DNA from: Asterias rubens
Taxonomy: Eukaryota
DNA: 64,000 nt
Reading direction: 5' to 3'
Assembly (NCBI RefSeq): GCF_902459465.1
Contig: NC_047082.1
Coordinates: 5,580,001-5,644,000 of the forward strand
Numbering within the stretch: the first letter of the stretch is position 1; each line of letters opens with the position of its first letter. This document shows, piece by piece, positions 13,501-45,638 of the stretch. The position numbers were made by a program, and so were the translations under genes. The notes beneath the pieces were generated by a model. It worked only from the letters and a program-made list of their open reading frames with translations, was not told the origin of the DNA and made no database searches.

Positions 13501-16500
13501 TATCAATAGCGTATCAGTAGGAAAAAAAGAATGTCGGAACGCTATTGTATGCCTGGCTAGAACGCTGCTCTTTACTATCTATAATTTCCATATTATCTAT
13601 ATATACATGTAATTATCCATTTTGTTTCTAAATTTGGGGTTGAACAAAGATAAATTGAGTAGATCGGGACTTGTACCTGCGACCTCTGGATTAATGCGCT
13701 GGCGCTCTGCCAGCTGCGTTAGGCGGTCTCCTTACTTTGTCAATAAGCCTATCTATGTCCAAGGGAGGTATTATAGGCAAACTGTTTACCTTCATCATCA
13801 TCCCATTGAAGCTCTTCATCATCAAGTGTTTGTGAGGATGTCATATCAGCACGTTCCATCAGTGCTGCTCTCCTTGCTTCATCTTGCTTCAACTGATCAA
13901 CTTTATAAAAGTAACGTCCCCAAAAATCAGCATTGGATACAACTGCAGGTACCTGTGAATAAGATCAAAACATTCAATCAGACAGAAACAAATTAGACAA
14001 ATTGGGCACGTTATTATAATTTCACTTAATTGGTCTCCCAGTGGAAACAAGATTGCAAATGGTGTCAATGTCAAATCTGTCAGACCACTCCCTAAACGGA
14101 GCATGTATGAATTTGGCAGATGGATAACTACTCATCAAGTGGAAGAGGTTCTGAATGCCACTAGCACTGGTGAAAAATCTAATGGTTTTTTTTATACGTT
14201 CAATGCTGCACTGGATCTCTACTTTCCTAGTCAAACTTCACACTTATGACAAACCATGGATCACTGCTGAAATCAAGGACACAATCAAAGACACAATCAA
14301 AGAACAATAACAATAGCAATAGCGATAGCGATAGCGATAGCGATAGCGATAGCGATAGCGATAGCGATAGCGATAGCGATAGCGATAGCGATAGCGATAG
14401 CGATAGCGATAGCGATAGCGATAGCGATAGCGATAGCGATAGCGATAGCGATAGCGATAGCGATAGCGATAGCGATAGCGATAGCGATAGCGATAGCGAT
14501 AGCGATAGCGATAGCGATAGCGATAGCGATAGCGATAGCGATAGCGATAGCGATAGCGATAGCGNNNNNNNNNNNNNNNNNNNNNNNNNNNNNNNNNNNN
14601 NNNNNNNNNNNNNNNNNNNNNNNNNNNNNNNNNNNNNNNNNNNNNNNNNNNNNNNNNNNNNNNNNNNNNNNNNNNNNNNNNNNNNNNNNNNNNNNNNNNN
14701 NNNNNNNNNNNNNNNNNNNNNNNNNNNNNNNNNNNNNNNNNNNNNNNNNNNNNNNNNNNNNNNNNNNNNNNNNNNNNNNNNNNNNNNNNNNNNNNNNNNN
14801 NNNNNNNNNNNNNNNNNNNNNNNNNNNNNNNNNNNNNNNNNNNNNNNNNNNNNNNNNNNNNNNNNNNNNNNNNNNNNNNNNNNNNNNNNNNNNNNNNNNN
14901 NNNNNNNNNNNNNNNNNNNNNNNNNNNNNNNNNNNNNNNNNNNNNNNNNNNNNNNNNCATGTATACACATTTATACAGAAAGAGAGGCTATTGAAAGCTA
15001 TAGATTCTGAGACCCAATTTTGTAGCACCTTATAAGGGTTTACAAGGTGCTACACATGTACAGCGCACTTCTCAGCCTTATAAAAAACGGACCTAATCAA
15101 AAACGTCAGGTTGCATTTGTAGAGAAGAAAACATTCCTTTGGCGTCTTCTTCGTAACAAAGTCAGCCACGCAATCAGTCGAGCCAAAAATTAATTCTACC
15201 AAAATCGTCTCCAGTGATCTATCAGGCTGGCATAAAGGAATCCAAATGCTCACCAATAAGACTCAGAAGCTCACCATGCCCACTGTGATTTCCGTCCTAG
15301 GCATACCCAAGAATGGTGACAAAGCTATCGCAGAGGCAATTAACCTTTTAACAGTCTCTCAAGGCAGACCCCCTATCAATCCCCAGGAACTGCCTGCAAA
15401 TCAAAGCTTGGGATATGTTCAATGCTCTTTAAAAATTTTTTCCCAAGAAATCAGCAGGCCATGATGGGCTCCCGGGAAAACTAACAAAAGAATTTGCATG
15501 TGAGCTTAGCATACAGTGTACACGTTTCTGATATATTTACATGTACATGTAACTCCTCTCTTATTGAGGGTTGTGTACCACAGACTTGGAAGGATGCAAA
15601 TGTTGTGCCAATTCCTAAAGAAACGCCAGCCACCATCACAAAGCTGAGACATATTTCACTGACTGCTCTCCAAGCAAAAATATGCGAAGGGTTTGTTTCA
15701 AAATGGGTTCTTGAAGATATCTGCACATCTATCGGCCGTAACCAGTATGGTAGTATACAGGGGTCATCAACTACTCATTGCTTAATCGAACTCCTTGATG
15801 TGCTCTACAGGTATACTGACAAAGCCGATAGAGTTGGCACGCTGGTAGTGACAGACTTTTCCAGGGCTTTTGACTGCGTCGATCATACTTTGGCTATTCA
15901 GAGATTACACGATCTAGGTGTCCGTAGCGAAATAACACCTTCTATCGATAACTTCCTGACGGCACTACACAAGAGAGTTCAATACCTGTCTGCCCTATCA
16001 GAATGGGAAACCATTTCCTGAGGAGTTCCCCAGGGTACGAAGTTGATGGGACCCATCGCATTCATTGGCTTTATAAACGAGCACTTCTGAAAGTAAGTAC
16101 CGACTCTTCTAGTTTTAAGTATGTCGATGATCTAAGCCTTGCTGAGGTCCGTCCTGCCAGTGTGCATACTCAGATTGACTTGGACCTTCAGGACCTTGAA
16201 GATTGGACCGACAGTAACCACCTCAAGCTCAATCCCTCTAAATGCAAGGTTATAAACATGATAAATGCAAGTGTGCTTCAAAAGAAACCCTCCATGTCCT
16301 TCAGATATGAAGATTGCTGACAAGGGGCTTGCTGGTGACTGAGACCAAGCTTCTCGGTCTTACTGTTCAATCAGATCTTAGATGGCATTCTCAGGTCAAT
16401 GGTGTGTAAGAGCAGTCATAGAATTTACATAATTGGTCGTCTCAAGCGTTTTGGTGAACCCGTTATGGTCTTGGCATCTGTGTATGTTGGCTACAATGTA

Positions 16501-24249: not shown

Positions 24250-27200
24250 CCTGTGTACAGAGAAAGAGTCCTACATAGGGCTACCGAAAACCTAACTTTT
24301 AGACCTGCAAATCAGAGGTCACACCTAGATGCTGACGCAAAAAAGCGGGACAGCAACAAGCAGAACACCGCAAACTTCAGAAGACGGAAAGACACCGCAG
24401 AAGTAACAAGTGCAGACGAGACATCCCGAAATAGGGTGCAGAAGAATTCTGCAAGTATAGGTATTCTTGTTACTGCACCAATGCACAAAGTTTAGTAAAA
24501 AGGGCAGAATTACACGCTACAATTGACGAGCTGAAACCAGACATCATTGGAATCACAGAAAGCTGGTGCAACAGTACCATAGTGGATGGGGAAGTAGCAA
24601 TCAGAGGTTACAGCATGTTCAGACTGGACAAGAATACACCAAGAGGAACTGGAGGGGAGGTTATTCTATATGTCAATGAGTCATACACAGCATTGGCATG
24701 TCACAAGCTGAATGAATTAGAAATGGAAAGCTCTACATGGTCCTCGGTCGCGGACAAGCTACAATCAAACGAAAACTTGTTGGTGGGGCTATGCTATGGG
24801 AGTCCTAACAGCACAGAGGAAAATAACAAGAAGTTAAGGCAGCAGATAGCGAATATCAAGACAGTCCAGAATGTATCTCACCTGTTGCTGTAGGCGATTT
24901 CAATTTCCCGGATATAGACTGGATAAACAACACTGTCAACGCTAACCAAGATTCAGAACCACATAAGTTCTTTGACTCCACTCAAGATGAGTTTTTGGTT
25001 CAGCATGTACTCAGCAACACTAGATGTAGATCGAGGCCAACAAAACCCATTACTGGTAGACCTGATCTTCTCAAGGGATGAGAACACCATTGACGAAGTA
25101 CTACACTCAGCACCATTAAGAGGCAGTGACCACGACGGACTACATGTACATGTAACATGGGCTTATGTGACCCACTCCGATGTGTACAGCAGATGATGAA
25201 TGCACGACACATAATTTCAGGAAAGGAGATTATCAAGAAATAAGTAAGCACATCAATAGCATTGACTGGGAGACCAACCTAAACAGCCTGAGCTGTGAGG
25301 AAGCAGGAATACAACAAGGCAGTTGAAGATAACATCCCCATGACAAAGAAGAAGAGGAAGAGTAAACCACCATGGCTTCGGGCTGGTGTCAAGCGATCTA
25401 CATGTATTAGATACAAGAAGCTTTTTCAGAAGTACAAAAGGACGCAACGATACATAGATTATCTTGAATATACCAAGCAAAGTAATAAGACCAAGAAGAC
25501 TGTGAGGCAAGCACTGTAGGCAGAGTACGAGAAGAGGCTGATGAAGCAGTTTAAGCTACATTTGTAAAACCAATTAGGCATTCTACGGATATGTAGTTCT
25601 CAAAACGACCGTGAATCAGCAAATGTACTAAACGATTTCTTCAAGAGTGTGTCTACAAAAGGTCACTCGAAGAAGGAGTTGTCCCAGACGACTGGAAACA
25701 AGCTAAAGTTGTCCCAATCTACAAGAAAGGATCGAAGATTAAAGCAAGCAACTACAGACCAATTAGTCTAACCAGCATGCCTTGCAAGGTCATGGAATCA
25801 CTTATCAGAGACAATGTTCACAGACAAGGTCCTACTATTAACAGAACACGTGGCTTTATCACAAGAAGATCCTGCATGTCCAACCTTCTAGATACCCTTG
25901 AAGATATTACAATGAACCTGGACAATGGGTCTGGAGTGGATGCATGTCATCTATTTGGACTACTCCAAGGTTTTTGACACTGTGCCCCACAAGCGCCTCA
26001 TTTCAAAACTGAGAGCCTACATGTATGGTCTTGAAGGAAGGATAATCAAATGGATCCAGGAATTCCTGAGTAACAGGAAGCAACAAGTAAAGCTAAGAGG
26101 CAAGCTATCCAACTGGGCAGACATATTGAGTGGCGTACCACAAGGATCTGTGCTAGGTGCAATACTACTTGTCCTCTACATCAACGACCTGCCGGATATT
26201 GTAACATCTACATCCAAATTATTTGCCGATGACACCAAGCTCTACAACAAAGTCTCGAAAGGAAAGTACAGATGGGGGAAACACGCTGCAGCAAGATTTG
26301 CATACCCTGGAGAAGTGGTCCGATACCTGTTTGCTGAGGTTTAATGCTCCAAAGTGTAAGTATACATGTATATGCACATGGGCAAGGATAACCCACTCAG
26401 AAGCTACATCTTAAGAGTCCCTGCCTGTAAGAATGTACCAAGTGGTGATTCATGGGTTCTCAGATCTTCTTCTAAAAAATTAGAGTCATACATTATCATA
26501 CCAAACGAATAAATCCAAAATATTAGTTTGCTGACACTTTCGGTTTGGGAGTTATCAGTTATCAAAGTTTCGGCCTAAAAGCCTTCGAGCAACGAATAGT
26601 ACATTCCCTGTAAACACAAAAATGTGCGCCAAGGTCATCCCAACAAAAGTAAAACATTTTTTGAAACCTCCAGTTGGGCTTAAAAAAAATTTGGGATCTC
26701 GTTGGCGCGTCATGTTACGCGCACCTGAACCTTTGACGAACAGTGCCCTCGTGCCATTTTCAACGCCTCATAACTCAACTCGCCTATAAGATCCCACGAA
26801 TTAAACAAGTTCCCATGAAAGAGCTTGCATCCCTAAAACAAATTGAAGTGCAAAGTGCGTGGGATCTCGTTGGCGCACAGAAATAATATAGGTTAAAGTT
26901 CAAATTTTACCAATATATTGCGTTTTCGCACCTCCGTAACCTTGCGCGCCAACAACAAAAAGTTGTTTTATGGCAACCGGGTGTTGGAACAGTTTTCATC
27001 TAATGACAATCGAAAAAAGAATCTTGAGATCTCTGCAACTTGCATGTCAAAAGATTTGTTGAAAGTTTTCTAAAGTATTGCCATTCCACACATTTTGGCC
27101 TAAATTGGCACAACATTCACTTTTTTCATCACTGTAAGTATCTGTGCCAACAAGATCCCATCAATGTTTTCTTGTATTTGGTTAAGTTGAGTGTTCCTAA

Positions 27201-28390
27201 ACAGATTTCAATTGAAAAATAATTGGGATCATGTTGGCCCACCAATATAACAAAGGTTAAAGGTCATATGAAACTACACTACTGCCTATTTCGGGCGATT
27301 TTGCGTAGTCTAGAAATCCACGCCATGGGATCTTATAGGCACGTTGAATTATGAGGCGTTGAAAATGGCACGAGGGCATTGTTCGCCAAAGGTTCAGGTG
27401 CGCGTAACATCATGACGCGCCAACGAGATCCCACTTTTTTTTATACTTTTGTTATAAGCCCAACTAGAGGTTTCAAAAAATATTTTACTTTTGCTGGGAC
27501 GAGCTTGGCGCACATTTTTGTGTTTACAGGGAATGTACTATTCGTTTCTTGAGGGTCTTTTGGCCCAAACTTTGATAACTGGCAACTCCAAAACCGAAAG
27601 CGTCAGCAAACTAAAATTTTGGATTTATTCGTTTGGTATGATGGTGTATCACTCTAATTTTTTAGAAGAAGATCTGCGAACCCATGAATCACACCTCCCC
27701 CCCCCCCAATTTGGTACATTTTTACAGGCAGGGACTCTTAAACGGGGTAGAAATTCAAGCAGAAGATGAAGAGAAGGATCTTGGGGTTTACCTCACATGA
27801 GACTGTAAACACACCCTACAGTGTACGAAAGCTGCTGGTATAGCAATGCAGAGCCTTAGGATCATCAGAAGTACCTTCAAGTACATTGATAGGGAAAGTT
27901 TTGCTATCCTGTACAAATTACATGTAGCTTACATCAGACCACACCTCGAGTATTGCGTTCAAGCATGGTGCCCATACCTACCACAGAAAGATATAAAGTG
28001 TCTGGAGAAAGTGCAGAGAAGAGGGAACTTGATCTCTTTCCCCTGGAAGTAAGAAGAGTGCGAGGGGACCTCATTGAAACCTTCAAGATTCTCAAGGGGC
28101 TCGTGGATATAGACGCCAAAAGTCTTTTCACACTCTCACAAACAAATAACACAAGAGGGCATGGCATGAAGCTACTGAACAAAGGGCTCAATCTTAGAAA
28201 ATATTTCTTCACACAGCGAGTTGGTGATAACTGGAATAGACTCCCAGCCAAAGTGGTCAATGCCAAGACAACCAATCAATTCAAAAACAGCTTAGACAAT
28301 TACCTGAATGAAAATGGATATGGGGTGTTAAAAGGCATAAGCCTACAATACTAAAAATCAATTCAAACCTTAAGTGTAAGTGTAAGTGTT
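24250..28390 (+). mobile_element. CR1-clade LINE (APE endonuclease plus RT), decayed, split by a DNA transposon insertion
   Basis: PDIIGITESW, GDFNFPDIDW, SDHDGL, YLDYSKVFDTVPH, SGVPQGSVLG, FADDTKLY, YIRPHLEYCVQAW and RGDLIETFKILKG motifs, with an (AAGTGT)n 3' tail. Confidence 0.95.
26415..27737. mobile_element. 1323-bp non-autonomous DNA transposon with long inverted arms and a TTAA target duplication (Kolobok-like)
   Basis: TTAA at 26411-26414 and 27738-27741, with termini GAGTCCCTGCCTGTAA / TTACAGGCAGGGACTC. Removing it restores the CR1 reading SYILNGVEIQAEDEEKDLGV. Confidence 0.92.
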
Positions 28391-34110: not shown

Positions 34111-35948
34111 CATAATGAGTTGATGTGGCTGGCAGCCAAAGGCGCCCTTGCATGCCTGCTTCTCGAACACGTTGTAGCCGTGTCCTTCAGCAATTCAGCT
34201 ATTAGCTGCGCGTAAGGATNNNNNNNNNNNNNNNNNNNNNNNNNNNNNNNNNNNNNNNNNNNNNNNNNNNNNNNNNNNNNNNNNNNNNNNNNNNNNNNNN
34301 NNNNNNNNNNNNNNNNNNNNNNNNNNNNNNNNNNNNNNNNNNNNNNNNNNNNNNNNNNNNNNNNNNNNNNNNNNNNNNNNNNNNNNNNNNNNNNNNNNNN
34401 NNNNNNNNNNNNNNNNNNNNNNNNNNNNNNNNNNNNNNNNNNNNNNNNNNNNNNNNNNNNNNNNNNNNNNNNNNNNNNNAAAAGAAAGATCTCATTTTCC
34501 TTTGTGCCGGTAACTCCTCGAGTCGGGCTACGTCCCGTAGCCTTAGATCTCAAGGGTCTTTCTCAGGATCCTCGCTGTTATTATTATTATTATTGTCTAG
34601 GGGCACATGGTACATGTAGGGAGTTATAAAACAAATATTGACTACATGTACATTTGCTACTGCTTCATTTATGGTTAAAACTATGACTCCCATGGCGATC
34701 TCTAGGGACTTTCCCTCAGCTACGCTGCACCTCAGGAAAACAGAACCCGCCGAGGATGCTAAGGCACCTTGCAAGTTATAGCCTTTAAAACCATAGCACT
34801 GGAAGCAGTCAATATTTACATACATGTACCATGACTCTCTGCTCAATGTATGTTTGATTATTACTCATTTCAGGGAGTAGTGTTGACTGCCATAGAGTTG
34901 TTCAATAGCCATGGGCAGAGAGCCCTTATGTAAGTAAAGGATCAATCGCTCCTCCGTGCTAAACAAACTTCTTTCCCCAAATTGATAATTAGATTGAGGT
35001 TGAAAATGACATGTACATGTTGTAACATCACTTTTCCTCAATATAATAATGGAAAGTCATCTGGTCATTGAAATAAAAAGGGGAATAAGGTTACACATGT
35101 TATCATAGTTTAGGATTACTTTTCATTCCCTTAGATATGATGAGTGCTACAAACATGTTTAAAGCTTATGTGGGTAAAATAAAAATAAATCTCAAAATTG
35201 TTTTCAGAAATGTTACAAGGAATACTGGGAACAATTTCCACTAGTGTAAAGATAAAAAGTTCAAGCTGAATTTTTGTTCAAGAAGAATCAAGACTTAATG
35301 TCCTTTTTTTATGAACAAAAAAACATTGACTAGTACAATATTTGATCCTCCTGGTTAATGTGCCGACGGTCTACCAACACAGTACACATGTAAAGTTCAC
35401 TTGCTCAAAACTCCAAAGCCTACATTTATGACACAATCTAAGACCCTGACTGTCATTGAGAAAGTGTTGAGATTGCGATGCAAAATGGTTATTGATGTGT
35501 AGCTCTTACTAACCTTGGGCGATATCACGACATTAACGAAAATTGCAATACCATTTCTTACGGTATCGTCTTGATTTTTTGTAGCAGTTAAAGTGTAGCT
35601 CTAGCTTTGTGAAATGTTGGCATTTTAGACTTCAAATCAAAAAAATTCACACCATGGGTAGGAGTACACCCAAAAGATGTATACCTCGATTGAATGGAAT
35701 TTTACACTTCAAAAAATTTATCGCGAATATCGCAAAACCTTTTTGACGATACATCGTGGTTTAAAAAAGCCATATCTTACCACTTTGTCCTCTCCATTGG
35801 GTTTGGGTACTGCATTAATAGTAAATCCTTTTTTTGACGTTACATACATTTTAATTTAATTATGCATAATTGTATGCAAGTTAAAGAGTACAGTGCTCAA
35901 AAGCATTGACTTTTACCCTGACTGAAAATACTTTCTTTCATAAAACAG

Positions 35949-38900
35949 GGTGTGAGGACTGTGGAAAAAGCCATATGGGGGATTGCCCAGTACATGGACC
36001 TTTGTTAAAGGTTAGGGATAAAGTGATACCTACAAGAGCAAGACTGACTTTACCCCACTACCTCATGTTAAAAGAGCTGGAGCTACGCACTGCAAACCAA
36101 CAAGGTAAATTTATAATACATGTACAGTGATGATAGCCAATCTTATTTTTCACTTAAAAAAAGAACATTTCCCAATGTGTTAAAAGTGAACATGCATGCA
36201 TTGAGCTGCTACAATTTTCCTGATTAATGTAGTTCTGACTTACCCTATCACAACCCTGATATGTTGGGGTATTCCGCCCGGAACACCTCTTGTTAGTTGT
36301 TTGGAGCGAAGCACAGACACCTCTTACTAGGTGTTGGGAGCGAAGCTCGGACACCTCTTACTAGGTGTTGGGAGCGAAGCTCGGACACCTCTTACTAGGT
36401 GTTGGGAGCGAAGCTCGGAACACCTCTTGTTAGAAGTTTGGAGCGAAGCTCGAAACACCTCTTGTTAGTTGTTTGGAGCGAAGCTCAGACACCTCTTACT
36501 AGGTGTTGGGAGCGAAGCTCGGACACCTCTTACTAGGTGTTGGGAGCGAAGCTCAGAACACCTCTTGTTAGAAGTTTGGAGCGAAGCTCGAAACACGTCT
36601 TGTTACAACCAGGTGTTTGGAGCAAAGCTCTTACTCTATGTAGGTGTTCCAAGCAAAGCTCGGAACACCTCTTAATACATGTTTGGAGTGAAGCTCGGAA
36701 CACCTCTTACTTGGTGGTTGGAACGTAGCTTCGAACACCTCTAGTTAGGTGTTTGGAGCGAAGCTCAGTACACCTCGTACTAGGTGGTTGGAGCTAATTT
36801 TTTGTTAGGTGATTAAAGCGAAGCTTGGAACAAATCTTAGTAGGTGTTTGAAGCAAAGCTCGGAACAGCTCTTACATGTCTTAGATGTTTGTTGAGAAGC
36901 TTGGAGAACCTCATTTGAGGTGTTTGAAGAGAAGCTGGGAACACGTCAATTTTGGTATTTGGAGCGAGGCTCGCAACACCTCTTTCTCGATGTTTGGAGT
37001 GAAGCTCGAAACACCTCTTGTTAGGTGTTTGGAACAAAGCTAGAGACACCTCTTACTAGGTGTTCGGAGCGAAGCTCGAAACACCTCGTAATACATGTTC
37101 AGATCGAAGCTGGGAACACCTCTTACTTGGTAGTTGGAGCGAAGCTTTGAACACCTCTTGTTAGGTGTGAGGAGCGAAGCTCGGAATACCTCGTACTAGA
37201 TGTTTGGAGCGAATTCTTTTTAGGTGATTTAGGTGTTTGGTATTTGGAGCGAAGCTCAGAACACCTCTTTTTAGGTGTTCAGAGCGAAGCTCGAAACACC
37301 TCTTACTTTTAATTTTGTTCAGGTGATTCAGGCATTGAGCTTGGAACACCTCTTATTATACATGTAGATACAAACACTACATGTAAAGGTTTGGTTTGTC
37401 TTAAAACTCCTTGCCCGTCACATATTATGCTGAACATAGTAACGTTTGTAACATGTTATTCTCACCTCTTGTTCTGTGCTTTTCTCTTTACAGTATTGGG
37501 AGTATTTGCTCGTAAGCTTATTCAGCAAAGAACACAGTTTGGTCCATTTATCGCCCCAAGAGTTCCAAAATTGGAGATCGTACCACCTGATAATAAACTC
37601 ATCTTCAAGGTAGTATTTTTGTGCAAAATTGAAGAAAAAAAACCAGTAAATCTGCCACGTTCTTCTGACAAATTGTGTGAGTGAGCATGTCTTAAAATGG
37701 CATTAGTGTTTGGTTTGTTTTACAGAAGCAACAAATAATGAGGATGGATTTACTGGAATGAAAAAGGCTGTTGTCAAAGTGAAGGATTGGTCAAAATAAA
37801 ACAAATTATGTATTCAATGGAGGGAAATGTACCATTTCTAGAGCGAGAAAGGGACAATACTTTAGTTTTCTTAGAATTGAAGGTTAATGTACCAGCCAGT
37901 TGTTTCCCCACTTCAGTGCGTTCTCTAAGAGAACATCTTACATCACATTTCATGTACAATCTAGTATAATCCCATTTACATAGTTGTCTTTATAGTGTTA
38001 CAGTGTTAAAATACCAATAACAATTTCTGTCCATTCTGATAAAACTTGAAGGTGTTCAAGAATAAAACTGAAGTCTCCACACTAGACCTCAGCAATGAAA
38101 ATGCCTGCAGTTGGATGATGTTTGTGCGAACTGCGACAACATTTGAGGAACAAAACTTGGTTGCCTATCAGTTCAACCAGGAAATCTACTTTGCTACTTG
38201 TAAAGTAAGTCACTCTGATTTATTATTATTTTTATGGGGTTCATATTGTGTTATGCCTGGTTGGTGGTGTGTGATGGAATAAGTCAAGTTGTTGTAATGT
38301 CAGCGTCCGGTACCATCAAATTTGTCTTGCATTCATGATAGGCCCTAGCATGCCTAGTGTGCGGATAAAATATTTACGATAGTCTAGTGATAATATTAAC
38401 AATGTTTTGCACCAAGACTGGCGCATCTTGTGCATAAAACATTGCTTCACCAATTTGATAAAAATTTGACCAGAAAAGACATCCTCGATTATAAATGAGG
38501 TCAATGTGCTGGTACTTTACCAACTGAGCTACATGTACATACAGCCATGTGTTGGCAGTCCGAAGGTCATTGGTTTAAATCCTGCCCTAGTAAAATTCTC
38601 TTAATTCAACCCCAATTAATTTGAAATTGACCCAGTCAGTCCCCTTGGATTATTTTTTTTTTATTAATCAGTTTTCACCCTAAACTACTATGTTGTTTCA
38701 CTTACTGAGTTGAAATTCCATTAGACTGAGTGCCACCTATGGGTTGGTATGAGAGAAGCATGGGCACAATCATCATTCACGACATCGGCAGTTCAAATGT
38801 GACAAGCGGGAATTTTTCTTTCTTTGATCTCTTCCTTAAACCACGTCAATTTATGACAATCCATGTAGCACAATGAGTGCATGCCCTGTGCAAGCTGCAC

Positions 38901-39823
38901 AATTGAATGTCCGCGCATGTTAACATGTACCCTCTTTGTTTTTGTCATACCCCCAAAAAAAATTCCAACAATCGCATCTCAGTTGCAACAATTGTACTAC
39001 TATATGTACTCTAACATTAATCATTATCAGGCTTTTATTTGTGTGTTTGTGAAAGTTTGATTTACACTCTTCCAGCTTTAAGTGTTAATCAAAATAAATT
39101 CTCTCATGCTACATACTGAACATGTACAACTGCTCTTATTTTTAACTGGTGGGTAATAAATACGTGGTTGTTACGTAGAAGTGTCATGGCCGAGCGGTTA
39201 AGAGCACCGAAGTCAAACTCTGGTGTTTCTGATCAGCAAAGTGTTTGTTTGAATCCCTCAGTCAGGACACTTATACAAGTGTCATTTAAAGCAAGACACT
39301 TAACCATTGCTTTTTCCTTCGTATGGGATGTAAAGCCATTAGTCCCATGTGTTGTGTAACGCATGTACACAATGTAAAAGAACCCAGTGCACTTATCAAA
39401 AAGAGAAGGGGTTCGCCCTGGTGTTCCTGGCTGTGGGTGCTGAATGCGCCATAGTACCTTGTTAACGTTACTGTGCACATAATTTGGTCGCAGAATTCAT
39501 AACCTTTCACTAACCTCCTTTCTGTATCAATGTATATACATTGTAGATGTACATGTAGGCCTATTAAGCGCCTTGAGTACCCTGTTACGTGTGCTACATG
39601 TGTATTTAAGACTTCCATATTATTATTACGGTTATTCCTTGTCAGTGTTGAACATCTCATGCATTAATACATTTCTGCAAACATTTGTGATTGGAAAGAG
39701 ATTTTCCCTTGTGTATTTTTTTGCTGTTCTAGCCTGTGGCACCCCATGCAGAGCTGAAAGTGTGGTATGCTTCTGACTATGCTGGGATCATGAACGTGGA
39801 ATTGCTGCATACAGATATCCCAG
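35949..39823 (+). CDS. PRDM10/PRDM15-type zinc knuckle plus PR/SET domain exons
   Basis: Spliced peptide (W)[101 protein letters not shown] carries the PRDM hallmarks [21 protein letters not shown] and ELKVWY. Confidence 0.92.
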
Positions 39824-42800
39824 GTAAGATTACAAAACTCTTTTAAAAACTCATTACTTCCATAATTGTATTCCCACTACTGAGATAACAAAAATATAAA
39901 AATGATTAAAAACTATGGCGTTTGTTTTAACAATGAATCAACCACCTTGGAAACTGTCACCTTCGGTTTATGGCAACCATTTGCATCATCTGTGACTGGG
40001 GCTGGTTTAAGGCCTGTGTTGTGCACTGTCTGATCTGCATGCTGTAAGACCATACCCTTGCTTGTTTTGGTGCCATGTCAACTTATGTACAAGGTTTCTA
40101 AAACACATAAGTTAGTGAAATACGATCAACCCCCCTCAGTGGGCGTAGCAGTACATGTACATGTACAGGTGTATGTACAACCAGTCAATACTAGTAGCTG
40201 CTATTCAATGAGCGAGTTTGAACTGTTTTGCATGGACGAGGGAGGAGGTGGAGCTTGATTATGGCTTCTAACACAAGACTGAAATAAATAGTGATTGTCA
40301 ATACATAAAACCAATTGAGGTTCGTTTTTTAACACTTTTGCATTCACACCTGTACAAGATTCATTCCTTTAATTGTCCTTTGTTTCTGCCACTATTGAAA
40401 AGGCTTGTTTTAGTTATTGATAGTCATTTCAGTTCTGGTGTTATCAATTGAAAGTAACCATGAACTCACCATTCAAACAATCTGTTGAATTGTCATTCAA
40501 GTTAGGGATCACATCTAAGAGAAAACAGGGTTTTGATTATGGTGTTCAAAATCAGTTGCAGCAGTTTGTGATATATTCAATTGTTGCTCACTTTATTTTG
40601 ACAGTATGTAAAGTCAGATGTACATGTATGCTAGTATTGAAATTGACTTTGTAAGGGGCAATTCAAAATTGTTGATGTTTTTTTTAATTCGACTATTTTT
40701 TTAATTAGTTGGTTGATGGGTCATGGTACATTAAATAATAAAAGCTAGATCGTTTGACTTGCCTGCTTACCAGCGTTCCTATGCGCGTGATGACCCGAGG
40801 TACAATGTGTACACAGACATTACATTATAATCTGTACAGCATGTGCATGACTCACCACTATGCAACACCATGTGCGTGGCCCATGTGAAACACCATTGGG
40901 AGTATGGCCCGCGTGTGATTCGGAACAACGGACGAGTCCACTTTTCTATTTTACTTGCAGCGGTCGAGTTGGACAACGAAAGTGTTGGACAACAGGCGAG
41001 TTGAGCTTTTAAGTTGAAAGCACAATGGTCGAATTAGAACAACATTCGAGTTGGTAAATGGTCGAGTTGGTTGGAATGGAGTTTGGCAAGCAGTGGTCGA
41101 GTTGACTGGAATCCATAACTTTCCAACCATCATAAACATGGCTGCCACCATGGATGTCAAATGCGAGTGCAATATACATGTACCATGTAGGTAGCAACCG
41201 CAGACCTAGTAAGTCTCACGCTTTTACGCAACGCAACCATTCTCTCACGCCTTGGGGCCAGACCAGGGGAAAAAAATAATGCACAATCTTCAGATTGCAA
41301 GCAGTTTTTCAGAACTATCAACTTAGGCTGGCATACAAACAGAGCGTGAATTTGCAGATTGCGCACGCTTTTGCTCTCTCACCAGATTCAGCTGACAATT
41401 TGGCAATTCGGCAATTCAGCAGAGCGCAAAACGCGAATTGTGCACAAGTTTGTCCCGATTCGTTTAGCAATTTGTTGAATGCGCTCAACAAGCATAGACT
41501 CATCAACACAACAGGCAGTCATGAGCGAAGGACTTTGCACATCATTTTATAGCCGGAAATTAATTTTCTTGGGGGAAATAATCTGTCACAATCGTACCTC
41601 CACATTAACCAGCAACATCGCCTGTGTACCTCATGTGAGTTTTAAGTACATATACTGAAAAGGTTTGAATGCAGTTTGAAACACTTTTTCCTCCACAGAA
41701 AAAAATTCTGCAAATTTTTTGTATTTAGCCGTTCTTTTTATTATTTCATTCCGGAGCAATTTTTGTCTTCTTCTGGCGGCGATTCCGTTAATTTCTGGGT
41801 AAAACTTCTTTTTTTTTAGGGGGGTTAAAAAATCTCATGCATAGCTGGCCTATGAACTTGGCACCCATCTTCACAGGTTTTGGTCACAACAAAAATTGAT
41901 GAGAAAAAAAAGTTTTAGCCTGGTCCGGTGTTATATACGATGCCTGAATATGCATTAACATCCATTCATAAATACCTCAGGCAGTTTCGCTATTCCTATT
42001 GGTGGAGAGCGCGTCACATGGGTGTGTATAAATCTTTGTTTATAACCAGTAAGAAGTGTTAAAACATAGGCGTGACATGCGAGCTTGCACCTGTGCTTAT
42101 AAGACAGTTTCTTCATTCCTATTGGTCGAGAGCAACGACTGAAACAGTTGTGCCACATCACGCGATACGCGCGACGCGCACAGCATTCCCTTATAAGAAG
42201 TTGTTTACCCGAGGGCGGCGGAGGACCTTACCATTTCATAGCTGGAGGGGTGTTGTGTTGAAAGAAATCATTGTAGAATTAAAATTTTTGCATTGATTTT
42301 ACTTTTTGACCAAAAAGTGTTGATGTTTTTTTGACCGTAAAGGTATTTATGAATGGGAATCAAAGTGTGTTGAATCGGTTTTCAACTAGTGGTTTAAACC
42401 GGCCTAGGCCTGGTTCTTGATAATTTACCTCGACGAAGTTGAAAACCTCTTCACCACACGTTGATTCCCTTATGCACACAAGTAAAAGTACATAATGCAA
42501 GTACATTGCCAAATGCAAACCACTTGTAGTTTTATTTTTAATACTGCATAATAAATCAATTTTTTTATAATAAAAATTAGGGGTGGGTAGGTAAAAAACA
42601 TCGAAATTTTAAAACATTGAAAGTTTTGAATGTCCAAGTGAAATACGCTTTAACTTTTTTTTTCTTTTTCTTATTGCAGATAATTCTCCAATTGATCATT
42701 CAAGTTCTTCTATTTCAAAATTACAAGTCAGTGATGATGCAACTAACATTGATGTCAAACAAACAACACAGGTACAGGTAAGTAAAGAGTTAATGTTTGG

Positions 42801-45638
42801 GAGATCTAAGTTACGTGATTTAACATCCATGCATATACTGGAAGTCGTTAAACTTATCATTGTTTGCAGGGACATTCAAACAAGCATGCATGTTGCATAA
42901 TTCATGTTATTCAATTATTATTATATATTACCAAAGGTTATATCACTCAGTGAGCAATTAACTATCTTCAAAGCTGATATTTGTTATGGTATGTGTGTGA
43001 CCGTTCCTGAAATTCGCAAGGTATCTCCATCATGATCAGGATATTAAAGCCATTGGACACTTTCGGTACAGACAAAAAAAAGTTCACAGATTTACAAATA
43101 ACTTACAGGGTTTACAGAAGGTAATGGTGAAAGACTTCTTTTGAAATATTATTCCATGAAATGCTTTACTTTTTGAGAAAACATTAAAACAATATAAATT
43201 CTCGATATCGAGAATTACGGATTTATTTTAAACACATGTCATGACACGGCGAACCGTGCGGAAACAAGGGTGGGTTTTCCCGTTGTTTTCTCCCGACTCT
43301 GATGATCGATTGAGCCTAAATTTTCACAGATTTGTTATTTGATATAGAAGTTGTGGTACACAAAGTGTGGGCCTTGGACAACACTGTTTACCGAAAGTGT
43401 CCAATGGCTTCAAGCAAAATTTTCTTTTTTACGTTGCCACATTAGAGTCAGATTCAGCCAAGTCATTAACCCATTACCTTTTTCTGATGACAAAATCAGA
43501 AATGTTGGGTGCGTTTGTAAATTTTTTGCTCAAAACTAACAACTGTCTGTCAAAAGTATCTTAATCTTCTCAATCTTTACCTTAAATGTTGTCAAAGGCA
43601 GTGGACACCTTTGGTAATTGTCAAAGACCAGTCATCTCACTTGATGTATCTCAACATATGCATAAAATAACAAACCTGTGAAAATTTGAGCTTAATTGGT
43701 CGTTGAAGTTGCGAGATAACTATGAAAGAAATCACTCTTGTCACACAAAGTTGTGTGCTTTCAGATGCTTGATTTTGAGACTTCAAAATCTAATTCTGAG
43801 GTCTTGAAATCAAATTTGTAGAAAATTACTTATTTCTCGAAAACTACGTCACTTCAGAGGGAGCCGTTTCTCACAATGTTCTCAACTTCTCCCCAATACC
43901 CGTTACCAAGTAAGGTTTTATGCTAATAATTATTTTGAGTAATTACCAAAAGTGTCCACTGCCTTTAAAACAATTTTGTTTGTACATTAAAATTATCAGT
44001 TAAAATTAAATTGTACCGCTACATCTACTTTGACAGCTTCATTTACTGAACCATTTTTTTCCCCACATTATGTTTTAGGACAAAAACAATAACAAGATCA
44101 GTAGAAACAGCTGTGAACCCTGGAAATGCTCAAATTGTAATAAGATGTTTGGAACCTTTTTTCTACTTGAGCAACACTCCTGTGAGTCGAAGAAAGCCAA
44201 ACGAGGACAGAAACCAAACAAGCACCTTCGCAGGAAACTGAATGCAAGAGAGTCACATCTTCGCAAGCATAAAGATCAAGAAATGAAGCAAGTGGCACAG
44301 GTCAAAGAACTAACACAGGTCAAAAATGAGGTTATTCAAGGATGTTCAAAGCCAAAGGTCAGAAAAGATCATGTAACATATGCTTGTCATTTGTGTCCAA
44401 AGGTGTTTTTAAATTCGGACAAATTGAAAACACACAGCTACATCCATACAGGGGAGCGCCCTTTTCCTTGCACAAGTAAAGATTGCACCAAGGCGTTTAT
44501 CTCAAAATACAAATTATTACGCCATGTGACGACCCATTCTCCGATGAAAGTTCATATTTGTTCATACTGTGACAAAAAATTCCATCGTAAAGATCACCTA
44601 AAAAACCACTTGCAAACCCATGACCCTAATAAAATCTCCTTTAGGTGTGGGGATTGTGGGAAAATGTACAACACTAAACCAGGGTTCAAGAAGCACATTG
44701 CTCTTCATGCTGCAGCGTCAGGAGAGCTCACTTGTAAAATTTGTGATAAAGATTTTGGAAACACACAAAGTTTACTTGAACATATCAAACTTCATTCAGG
44801 AAAATCAAATGGCGCTAAAGAGAAAAGACATCGGTGTGAACATTGTGATAGACAATTTTACACAAGAAAAGATGTGAGGAGACATATGGTTGTACATACA
44901 GGCAGAAAAGACTTTCTATGTCAAGCTTGTGGGCAAAGGTTTGGTCGTAAAGATCATCTTGTAAGACATACAAGAAAAAGCCATGATAGTAGCGAGCAAT
45001 TACGGGTTAAATTAGGCGAGCATTTGCAAACTGTGGGATCAGCAACTGTTCAACAGATGTTAGATATGCAGCAATTCCAAGGACAAATTCATATTCCTCT
45101 GCCTCAAGGTAATCAATGCTCAATTGGACAAATGACATCTTCTCACCAGTTAACAGATTTGTTGAAGATTCCTCCAGTACCAACACCTAGGTTCTCCAAC
45201 AAGACTGCGCAGAAGGTTTCATCACCTAAGGCACCTGTTAGATTGATGATAGAAAAGACAACAGTGGATACATATTTAGACTCTGGCAACCTTAAAGGAA
45301 TATCAGGAGCAGATTCATTCCACTCAGGATCTGTTGATTTAGGTCAACTTTTAGGCTTTCTACCAATCCAGCAACATTCTCCAATACCACCACCAACTCC
45401 TCCGCAAACTTTGACACCCACTTCCCCACCTAACACACTACCTCACAGCCCTATTACAATATGTCTACCCCAACATCAGCAATCCCAGCAACCACTCCAT
45501 CCACAAATGCAGCATCAATCACAACAACAGCTACAAACTATGCAGTCACCATGTACAGACAACATTCATAGTATGGTGCAAGTACCATTTACCAATATGC
45601 ATTCTGCATTGCCACGCTTCCATCAAGCTTTCCAGTAG
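35949..45638 (+). CDS. PLAG1: PR/SET-domain PLAG-family zinc-finger protein; exons 35949-36104, 37494-37609, 38052-38204, 39733-39823, 42680-42777, 44079-45638
   Basis: Six GT-AG exons with continuous phase (1/1, 1/0, 0/0, 0/1, 1/0, 0/stop). The N-terminal part has a zinc knuckle [17 protein letters not shown] and a PR/SET domain. The terminal exon has seven PLAG-type C2H2 fingers and ends LPRFHQAFQ*. The symbol denotes the PLAG1/PLAGL2 family, probably a pro-ortholog. Confidence 0.88.
36283..37352. repeat. 34-35-bp minisatellite (about 30 units) in an intron of the PR-PLAG gene
   Basis: Unit GAGCGAAGCTCGG(A)ACACCTCTTACTAGGTGTTGG, decaying toward the 3' side. Confidence 0.95.
39178..39575 (+). 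mobile_element. tRNA-derived SINE
   Basis: Head GTGTCATGGCCGAGCGGTTAAGAGCACC (A-box) and TTTGAATCCC (degenerate B-box), followed by a GCAAGACACTTAACC core. Confidence 0.75.
44079..45638 (+). CDS. PLAG1: Terminal exon: seven C2H2 zinc fingers plus Pro/Gln-rich PLAG C-terminal region
   Basis: ORF 44145-45638 extends upstream to the acceptor at 44078/44079. It contains [72 protein letters not shown] and LPRFHQAFQ, which I recall as PLAG1/PLAGL2 signatures. Confidence 0.95.

Follow-up and report, generated by a model that had tools for sequence, protein, structure and literature searches.

A PRDM-type PR domain in front of seven PLAG-type zinc fingers in the starfish Asterias rubens, and its probable place in the history of the PLAG family

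PLAG1, PLAGL2, and PLAGL1 (ZAC1) have been approached as simple seven-finger growth regulators, the first two as oncogenes and the third as an imprinted tumour suppressor, and the PLAG site is bipartite, made of a GRGGC core and a G-cluster, GRGGC(N6-8)GGG, with fingers assigned to the half-sites in the PLAG1 literature. RIZ1/RIZ2 and MDS1-EVI1/EVI1 provide the examples of a PR-plus/PR-minus logic, in which tumour suppressor is set against oncogene. Here we describe a gene of the starfish Asterias rubens, located in a 64 kb stretch of eukaryotic, AT-rich DNA with three N gaps (NC_047082.1, positions 5,580,001 to 5,644,000; hereafter the window). Its protein carries a putative zinc knuckle and a PR/SET domain in front of seven PLAG-type fingers and a PLAG C-terminus. 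We consider it very probable that this is an ancestral full-length PLAG orthologue with a PRDM-type module, belonging to a bilaterian-wide PRDM subfamily nearest to PRDM10/15.

A zinc knuckle directly 5' of the PR domain is a trait of the PRDM4/9/10/11/15 group and not of all PRDMs. A study of PRDM evolution covering 976 genes recognised 14 subfamilies named after human genes, together with 45 orphans (PMC4760075). That paper does not mention PLAG, in agreement with an earlier annotation of this DNA, made from the letters by a model (hereafter the first-pass annotation), which had stated that PRDM classifications include no PLAG-type member. A full-text literature search, with subscription journals mostly outside its coverage, found no paper linking PLAG to PRDM or reporting a PR domain in a PLAG protein. 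The architecture itself is already visible in public databases under automatic names.

One spliced frame with a PR domain and seven PLAG fingers

The open reading frame (ORF) of the last coding exon (44079-45635, 519 amino acids) is 100% identical to the A. rubens RefSeq protein P0001, "zinc finger protein PLAG1-like isoform X2 [Asterias rubens]", of 728 amino acids. Seven spliced coding exons translate letter for letter into this protein. All six introns have GT-AG borders and are phase-compatible, and the spliced frame contains no stop codon. The exons are as follows, with Q/P/S-rich standing for rich in glutamine, proline, and serine.

34911-34929, plus strand: coding exon 1 (19 nucleotides), start codon, MGREPL and base 1 of a Trp codon; donor GTAAGT; needed for an exact P0001
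35949-36104, plus strand: coding exon 2, putative zinc knuckle (C8, C11, C19, H22) and start of the PR domain
37494-37609, plus strand: coding exon 3, PR domain with the VLGVF and TQFGPF motifs; donor GT at 37610, not 37613
38052-38204, plus strand: coding exon 4, core of the PR domain
39733-39823, plus strand: coding exon 5, end of the PR domain
42680-42771, plus strand: coding exon 6, low-complexity linker; alternative in-frame donor at 42777
44079-45638, plus strand: coding exon 7, post-PR C2HC finger (ending LLEQHSC) followed by a basic stretch, seven PLAG-type C2H2 fingers (residues 312-512), Q/P/S-rich region, terminal LPRFHQAFQ, stop codon

Splice-site combinations were enumerated by brute force, which gave many open frames, and the choice among them was settled by matching the RefSeq protein. 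For the borders of exons 3 to 5 only one of the combinations tried yields P0001, with the exon-3 donor moved to 37609. The donors 42771 and 42777 of exon 6 are both in frame, the latter inserting Val-Gln. The six-exon ORF proposed in the first-pass annotation is therefore real as a spliced frame and corresponds to P0001, while the 19-nucleotide exon 1 had been missed, the exon-3 donor needed correction, and 42777 had been taken where P0001 uses 42771. Regarded simply as a gene, this is an ordinary, already annotated PLAG-family orthologue.

The PR domain is recognised by sequence profile as well as by predicted structure. Pfam PRDM2_PR (PF21549) covers residues 52-169 with an expect value (E) of 1.1e-34 and 119 bits, against a cut-off of 27. 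Compared with PDB sequences, residues 1-185 match PRDM10 (3ihx, 4.6e-25), PRDM4 (1e-23), and PRDM9 (9e-19), as well as the PR domains of PRDM11, PRDM1, PRDM2, and others. In all, 15 PRDM PR-domain chains match, the weakest at 1e-06, and a PRDM4 zinc-knuckle peptide matches at 0.0066. Residues 1-262 were modelled with AlphaFold on a 35-sequence alignment; the model reached a mean predicted local distance difference test score (pLDDT) of 82.9, higher than 90 across most of the PR domain, and its top Foldseek matches were PRDM4 (3db5, target template modelling score, TM, of 0.89) and PRDM10 (3ihx, 0.86-0.90). A look-up in the ESM Atlas returned generic PRDM clusters only.

The elements that flank the PR domain appear to have counterparts in PRDM10. 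In front of it, residues 6-30 give a weak match to a PRDM4-type zinc knuckle (PF18445, E 0.0019, 18.4 bits, under the curated cut-off of 25.8); C8, C11, C19, and H22 are invariant in an eight-sequence alignment of PR-PLAG proteins and one PRDM10, and they align with the knuckles of PRDM10 and PRDM9. Behind it, a short variable linker leads to a finger-like motif, WKCSNCN-x-F-x5-LLE-x-H-x-C, kept in starfish, turtle, crayfish, and brachiopod, which aligns with PRDM10's single canonical finger behind its PR domain (C226, C229, F233, L239, and H242 being invariant). Since knuckle and post-PR finger both align and share these invariant residues, the entire N-terminal module appears to be common to PRDM10. 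Among starfish the PR domain is as conserved as the fingers (83-85% versus 85-87% identity), which argues that it is functional. A PR domain and a C2H2 array are thus combined in one ORF, as is typical of a PRDM protein, with their linkage partly shown at the transcript level (see below).

The second half of the protein is that of a PLAG. A regular-expression scan locates seven canonical C2H2 fingers at residues 312-512, Pfam also detects C2H2 fingers, and this block is 62-70% identical to vertebrate PLAG1, PLAGL1, and PLAGL2 over ~210 residues, with BLAST alignments that continue to the C-terminal residue of PLAG1. The recognition quartets (helix positions -1, 2, 3, and 6) of fingers 2, 3, 6, and 7 are SYKR, RDHN, TKDR, and RDHR, and they are identical in Asterias, amphioxus, mammalian PLAG1, coelacanth PLAGL2, and the PLAGL1 of marsupial, bird, and shark; crayfish, katydid, and Lingula have the same quartets in fingers 3, 6, and 7. 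The Asterias protein ends in LPRFHQAFQ, a motif that recurs unchanged in Ptychodera, Branchiostoma, lamprey, frog and mammal PLAG1, and coelacanth PLAGL2, with near-copies in PLAGL1, one insect, and one annelid, and a further 10-residue motif in the Q/P/S-rich C-terminal region is common to starfish, hemichordate, and amphioxus. Because the recognition residues of fingers 2, 3, 6, and 7 are the same as in mammalian PLAG, the fingers are predicted to read the bipartite PLAG site, with its GRGGC core and G-cluster, and the Q/P/S-rich tail ending in LPRFHQAFQ would be the presumed activation region.

The PR/SET domain, the seven PLAG-type fingers, and the PLAG C-terminus had all been named by the first-pass annotation, and the data above bear it out on each of them. 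Its description of the PR domain as PRDM10/15-like is right as far as the nearest relative is concerned, with PRDM4 almost as close, and wrong if taken to mean a PRDM10/15 orthologue.

Catalytic positions of the PR domain

In PRDM9, Y276, Y341, and Y357 are the catalytic tyrosines and N320 binds S-adenosylmethionine (AdoMet or SAM) (PMC5519329, PMC9861158). The equivalent positions in Asterias and in the other PR-PLAG and PRDM10 proteins are:

PRDM9 Y276: F77 in Asterias; Phe, Tyr or Leu in the others, depending on the phylum
PRDM9 N320: R123 in Asterias; Arg in nearly all others
PRDM9 Y341: F144 in Asterias; Phe in nearly all others
PRDM9 Y357: Y160 in Asterias; Tyr in nearly all others

Three of these four catalytic or SAM-binding positions are substituted in Asterias, so that the residue set of an active PRDM9-type enzyme is mostly missing, and the pattern, with Y357 alone kept, is the one reported for PRDM15 (PMC9861158). 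Because the PRDM9 catalytic set is mostly lost and the pattern is PRDM15-like, we think that the PR module is probably a non-catalytic interaction or regulatory domain. Having kept its fold, it most likely serves for docking or regulation, the role also assumed for the PR domains of PRDM10/15 and PRDM4.

The alternative that survives best accepts the same gene and the same history and takes the PR domain as an active lysine methyltransferase marking PLAG binding sites. Conservation of Y160 (equivalent to Y357), of the ELxVWY motif, and of one glycine of the GxG motif would suit an enzyme, and so would the strong purifying selection on the domain. On the other hand, the position of the SAM-binding Asn320 of PRDM9 is taken by Arg in almost every PR-PLAG and PRDM10 sequence, that of Y341 by Phe with few exceptions, and that of Y276 by Phe, Tyr, or Leu depending on the phylum. 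PRDM15, the closest relative on which the cited papers comment, is called uncharacterized and keeps only Y357 (PMC9861158). The methyltransferase function implied by the first-pass annotation is, accordingly, unlikely, with a small residual chance left for a weak or atypical activity.

Distribution, transcripts, and trees

The joined architecture has been predicted independently in more than 40 species of at least seven phyla. Among echinoderms it appears in three asteroids, two crinoids, one echinoid, and one holothurian, and the other non-vertebrate deuterostomes that have it are the hemichordate Ptychodera and amphioxus. In vertebrates it is found in seven sharks and in turtles, alligator, and birds, annotated there as "PLAGL1 isoform X2" (the bird clusters comprise 400-600 member sequences), while the lamprey model is N-terminally truncated and keeps the C-terminal part of the PR domain. 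The protostomes include the annelid Owenia, the brachiopod Lingula, bivalves, gastropods, Octopus, decapod crustaceans, polyneopteran insects (Timema, Anabrus), and tardigrades. Some models, among them that of Saccoglossus, have no PR part. The automatic names waver between "PLAG1", "PLAGL1", "PRDM10-like", "PRDM4-like", and "PRDM15-like", and the annotation pipelines therefore detect both halves of the protein. A search with the PR domain of turtle PLAGL1 gave, above the level of PRDM10, only turtles, a crocodilian, birds, sharks, amphioxus, ambulacrarians, Lingula, and Owenia, and no mammal, squamate, amphibian, teleost, or lobe-finned fish. There was no cnidarian, sponge, or placozoan among the named matches, in searches that were not aimed at those groups.

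Two peculiarities of the gene models deserve mention. In six bivalve PR-PLAG models (P0128, P0131, P0134, P0154, P0226, and P0281) the two halves of the PR domain lie ~200-400 residues apart, which is due either to a genuine large insertion or to an error common to these gene models. In birds there are also PR-only models of ~200 amino acids (the P0221 cluster), which used to be called "PRDM10-like" and are now short "PLAGL1 isoform X2/X4"; birds may make PR-only PLAGL1 isoforms, or the PR exons may once have been annotated as a separate gene.

At the transcript level, the evidence consists of transcript contigs from two runs of a closely related sample (~1% divergent) and of RNA depth along the window. 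Contigs of 3727 and 1978 nucleotides span all of exon 7 and extend 612 and 352 nucleotides, respectively, 5' of its acceptor. A contig piece of matching depth starts exactly at 42680, the acceptor of exon 6, and RNA depth is above zero over exon 5 (bin 39700-39898). This geometry fits a spliced PR-to-finger mRNA, and the RNA support is partial.

These data bear on a second alternative, in which the model is an annotation chimera made by wrongly joining two separately transcribed genes, a small one with the PR domain alone and a PLAG gene downstream of it. The PR-only bird models, the models without a PR part in Saccoglossus and some others, and an RNA listing in which joints of high-copy intronic repeats displace those between exons could all be cited for it. 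Yet the phase-compatible introns and stop-free frame speak for a single gene, as does exon 7, which has no start codon of its own 5' of the conserved post-PR finger; the contigs reach beyond the exon-7 acceptor, with a piece of the same depth over exon 6; and the joined form recurs in independent predictions, with congruent trees for the two domains (see below). We regard a chimera as very unlikely.

Within introns 5 and 6, the segments 41889-42485 and 42884-44077 show RNA depths 10^3 to 10^5 times those of the exons, as well as numerous rearranged joints within them and opposite-strand joints. Both segments resemble interspersed repeats or transposons of very high copy number, probably transcribed.

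The finger tree (50 rows, 232 columns, IQ-TREE, rooted on protostomes) mirrors the species tree, with paired support values of 98/91 for Ambulacraria, 97/90 for chordates, and 97/88 for vertebrates. The starfish gene falls with the other ambulacrarians, sister to the chordate PLAGs, as expected of a pre-duplication orthologue. In vertebrates, PLAG1 plus PLAGL2 (98/96) stand opposite a group formed by the lamprey and by the PR-bearing shark genes together with PLAGL1 (sharks and PLAGL1, 97/85). Since they group with PLAGL1, the PR-bearing shark genes named "PLAG1-like" are PLAGL1 orthologues. The PLAGL1 clade itself (99/96) holds PR-bearing archelosaur proteins and a PR-less marsupial protein side by side.

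For the PR domain, a larger quick tree of 163 rows did not resolve the deep relations among PLAG-type, PRDM10, and PRDM9-like sequences, and a smaller and more careful one was used (55 rows, 177 columns, rooted on PRDM9-like sequences, with PRDM4 and other subfamilies left out). In it, 38 PLAG-type PR domains lie on one side of a branch (80/84, 86% of bootstrap trees) and PRDM10 forms a separate clade (97/81) with representatives from Owenia, Dreissena, Aplysia, and Branchiostoma, all of which have a PLAG-type gene beside PRDM10. Inside the PLAG-type group, deuterostomes (96/90), Ambulacraria (99/93), and chordates (98/93) are again recovered. The two trees, built separately as the first-pass annotation had proposed, are congruent and also match the species tree, and therefore both halves of the protein share their history down to the bilaterian ancestor.

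A third alternative would make the gene the starfish orthologue of PRDM10/15, with fingers that became PLAG-like by convergence, much as the automatic names given in Patiria, Lingula, Patella, and Octopus suggest. The best matches of the PR domain outside PLAG are indeed PRDM10, and the knuckle-PR-finger module appears to be shared with it. However, true PRDM10 coexists with the PLAG-type gene in the four genera just named and forms its own clade, the fingers have the identity, the recognition residues, and the C-terminal motif of PLAG, and PRDM10 has ten different fingers with quartets unlike those of PLAG. Grouping of the fingers with PRDM10/15, which the first-pass annotation had named as one outcome that would overturn its view, did not occur; they are PLAG fingers. 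We reject this alternative, to which we give an even slimmer chance than to the chimera. As for a lineage-specific fusion, echinoderm or ambulacrarian, in which a PLAG gene captured PRDM10-like PR exons (one of two origins offered by the first-pass annotation), nothing favours it beyond the textbook, mammal-based picture of PR-less PLAGs, and it is refuted, with a negligible chance of being right, by the presence of the architecture in amphioxus, sharks, turtles, crocodilians, birds, annelid, brachiopod, molluscs, crustaceans, insects, and tardigrades and by a PR tree that mirrors both the finger tree and the species tree.

The other origin offered there, PLAG as an unrecognised PRDM lineage with loss of the PR domain, gains support from the bilaterian-wide architecture and the congruent trees, and the proteome search for PR plus PLAG that it had recommended found the combination in echinoderms, hemichordate, amphioxus, molluscs, and others. 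Its statement that vertebrate PLAGs have no PR domain holds for PLAG1, PLAGL2, and mammalian PLAGL1, and fails for the PLAGL1 of sharks, turtles, crocodilians, and birds. On this evidence the Asterias gene would be the sole Asterias orthologue of the PLAG1/PLAGL1/PLAGL2 family, in its ancestral full-length form, and would encode a sequence-specific transcription factor. As judged from the sequences, the most parsimonious course would be a loss of the PR domain once in the PLAG1/PLAGL2 stem and once in mammalian PLAGL1, while sharks, turtles, crocodilians, and birds would retain the module in PLAGL1.

Several observations weigh against an ancestral PLAG orthologue with a docking-type PR module. 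The joint between PR exons and finger exon depends on contig geometry, the RefSeq model, and conservation. Support for the monophyly of PLAG-type PR domains is moderate (80/84), and Patella and Octopus, on long branches, fall outside the PLAG-type group in the larger quick tree. The PR domain of a beetle protein (P0268, Anthonomus, "PRDM15-like") sits in a basal polytomy of that group. Sister status to PRDM10/15 was tested against a PRDM9-like outgroup only, with PRDM4 nearly as close in sequence and structure. Concerning function, compensatory changes are possible, so that lost tyrosines do not prove absent catalysis (PMC5519329), and the PR domains of vertebrate PLAGL1 retain the tyrosine equivalent to Y276. 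With these points taken into account, we still hold the ancestral orthologue to be very probable, and we lean slightly towards the more specific proposal that PLAG is an undescribed PRDM subfamily of bilaterian-ancestor age, sister to PRDM10/15, of which PLAG1, PLAGL2, and mammalian PLAGL1/ZAC1 are PR-minus derivatives.

The beetle protein P0268 belongs in the quick tree to a 34-tip clade of unnamed sequences, of which it alone was taken into the careful tree, and was not among the best PLAG-finger matches; it may be a derived descendant of a PLAG-type gene or a long-branch artefact.

Other features of the window and comparison with known systems

The long ORFs that precede the PLAG gene in the window include none recognised as belonging to another gene. 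The remaining features are repeats or resemble mobile elements:

36279-37305, no strand assigned: minisatellite, 35 bp x 29 copies, inside intron 2 and outside the protein
15494-16021, 25925-26344, and 27953-28354: ORF fragments that by eye resemble the reverse transcriptase of non-LTR (long terminal repeat) retrotransposons (e.g., YLDYSKVFDTVPH)
14246-14565: long GA/TC-type dinucleotide microsatellite, adjoining the N gap at 14565-14957

The ~29 copies of the minisatellite, with a 72% match, fill much of intron 2 and give rise to many spurious short ORFs on both strands.

The significance of the gene is evolutionary and annotational, an inference at the level of the family and not a new biochemical mechanism. 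If our interpretation is true, the PRDM family gains one subfamily, and the PR-plus/PR-minus logic of RIZ1/RIZ2 and MDS1-EVI1/EVI1 would extend to PLAG. The mammalian PLAGs would then be a natural experiment in PR-domain loss, the loss in PLAGL1 being dated to the mammalian stem, near the origin of PLAGL1 imprinting, with an ancestral PRDM10-like module still expressed in non-mammalian vertebrates. PLAG function in most animals would probably involve PR-recruited partners that are invisible to work on mammals, and chicken, turtle, shark, amphioxus, and starfish would become tractable systems for studying what the PR module contributes to a PLAG-site binder.

Compared with the vertebrate PLAG family, the starfish protein has the same seven fingers (62-70% identical), the same quartets in fingers 2, 3, 6, and 7, and the same type of Q/P-rich tail with LPRFHQAFQ, but PLAG1, PLAGL2, and mammalian PLAGL1 lack its ~260 N-terminal residues. 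The long PLAGL1 isoforms of sharks and archelosaurs, known from automatic gene models alone, have the full architecture, with PR domains 50-58% identical to that of the starfish and orthologous to it in both trees; they differ in being products of the vertebrate duplications and in having Tyr, instead of the starfish Phe, at the Y276 position. PRDM10 and PRDM15 have the nearest PR domain (~40% identity), the same apparent order of knuckle, PR domain, and lone finger, and the same catalytic substitutions, including Arg for N320, whereas PRDM10 is a separate clade that coexists in the same species, is much larger, and has ten unrelated fingers and no PLAG C-terminus. Finally, FOG1 (ZFPM1) is a comparable case of a zinc-finger regulator recognised late as a PR carrier, and its structure 2mpl ("PR domain of FOG-1") is among the Foldseek matches of our model; the FOG PR domain is, however, highly divergent (Foldseek E 6.7e-05) where the starfish one is canonical, and FOG keeps it in mammals, while the PLAGs do not.

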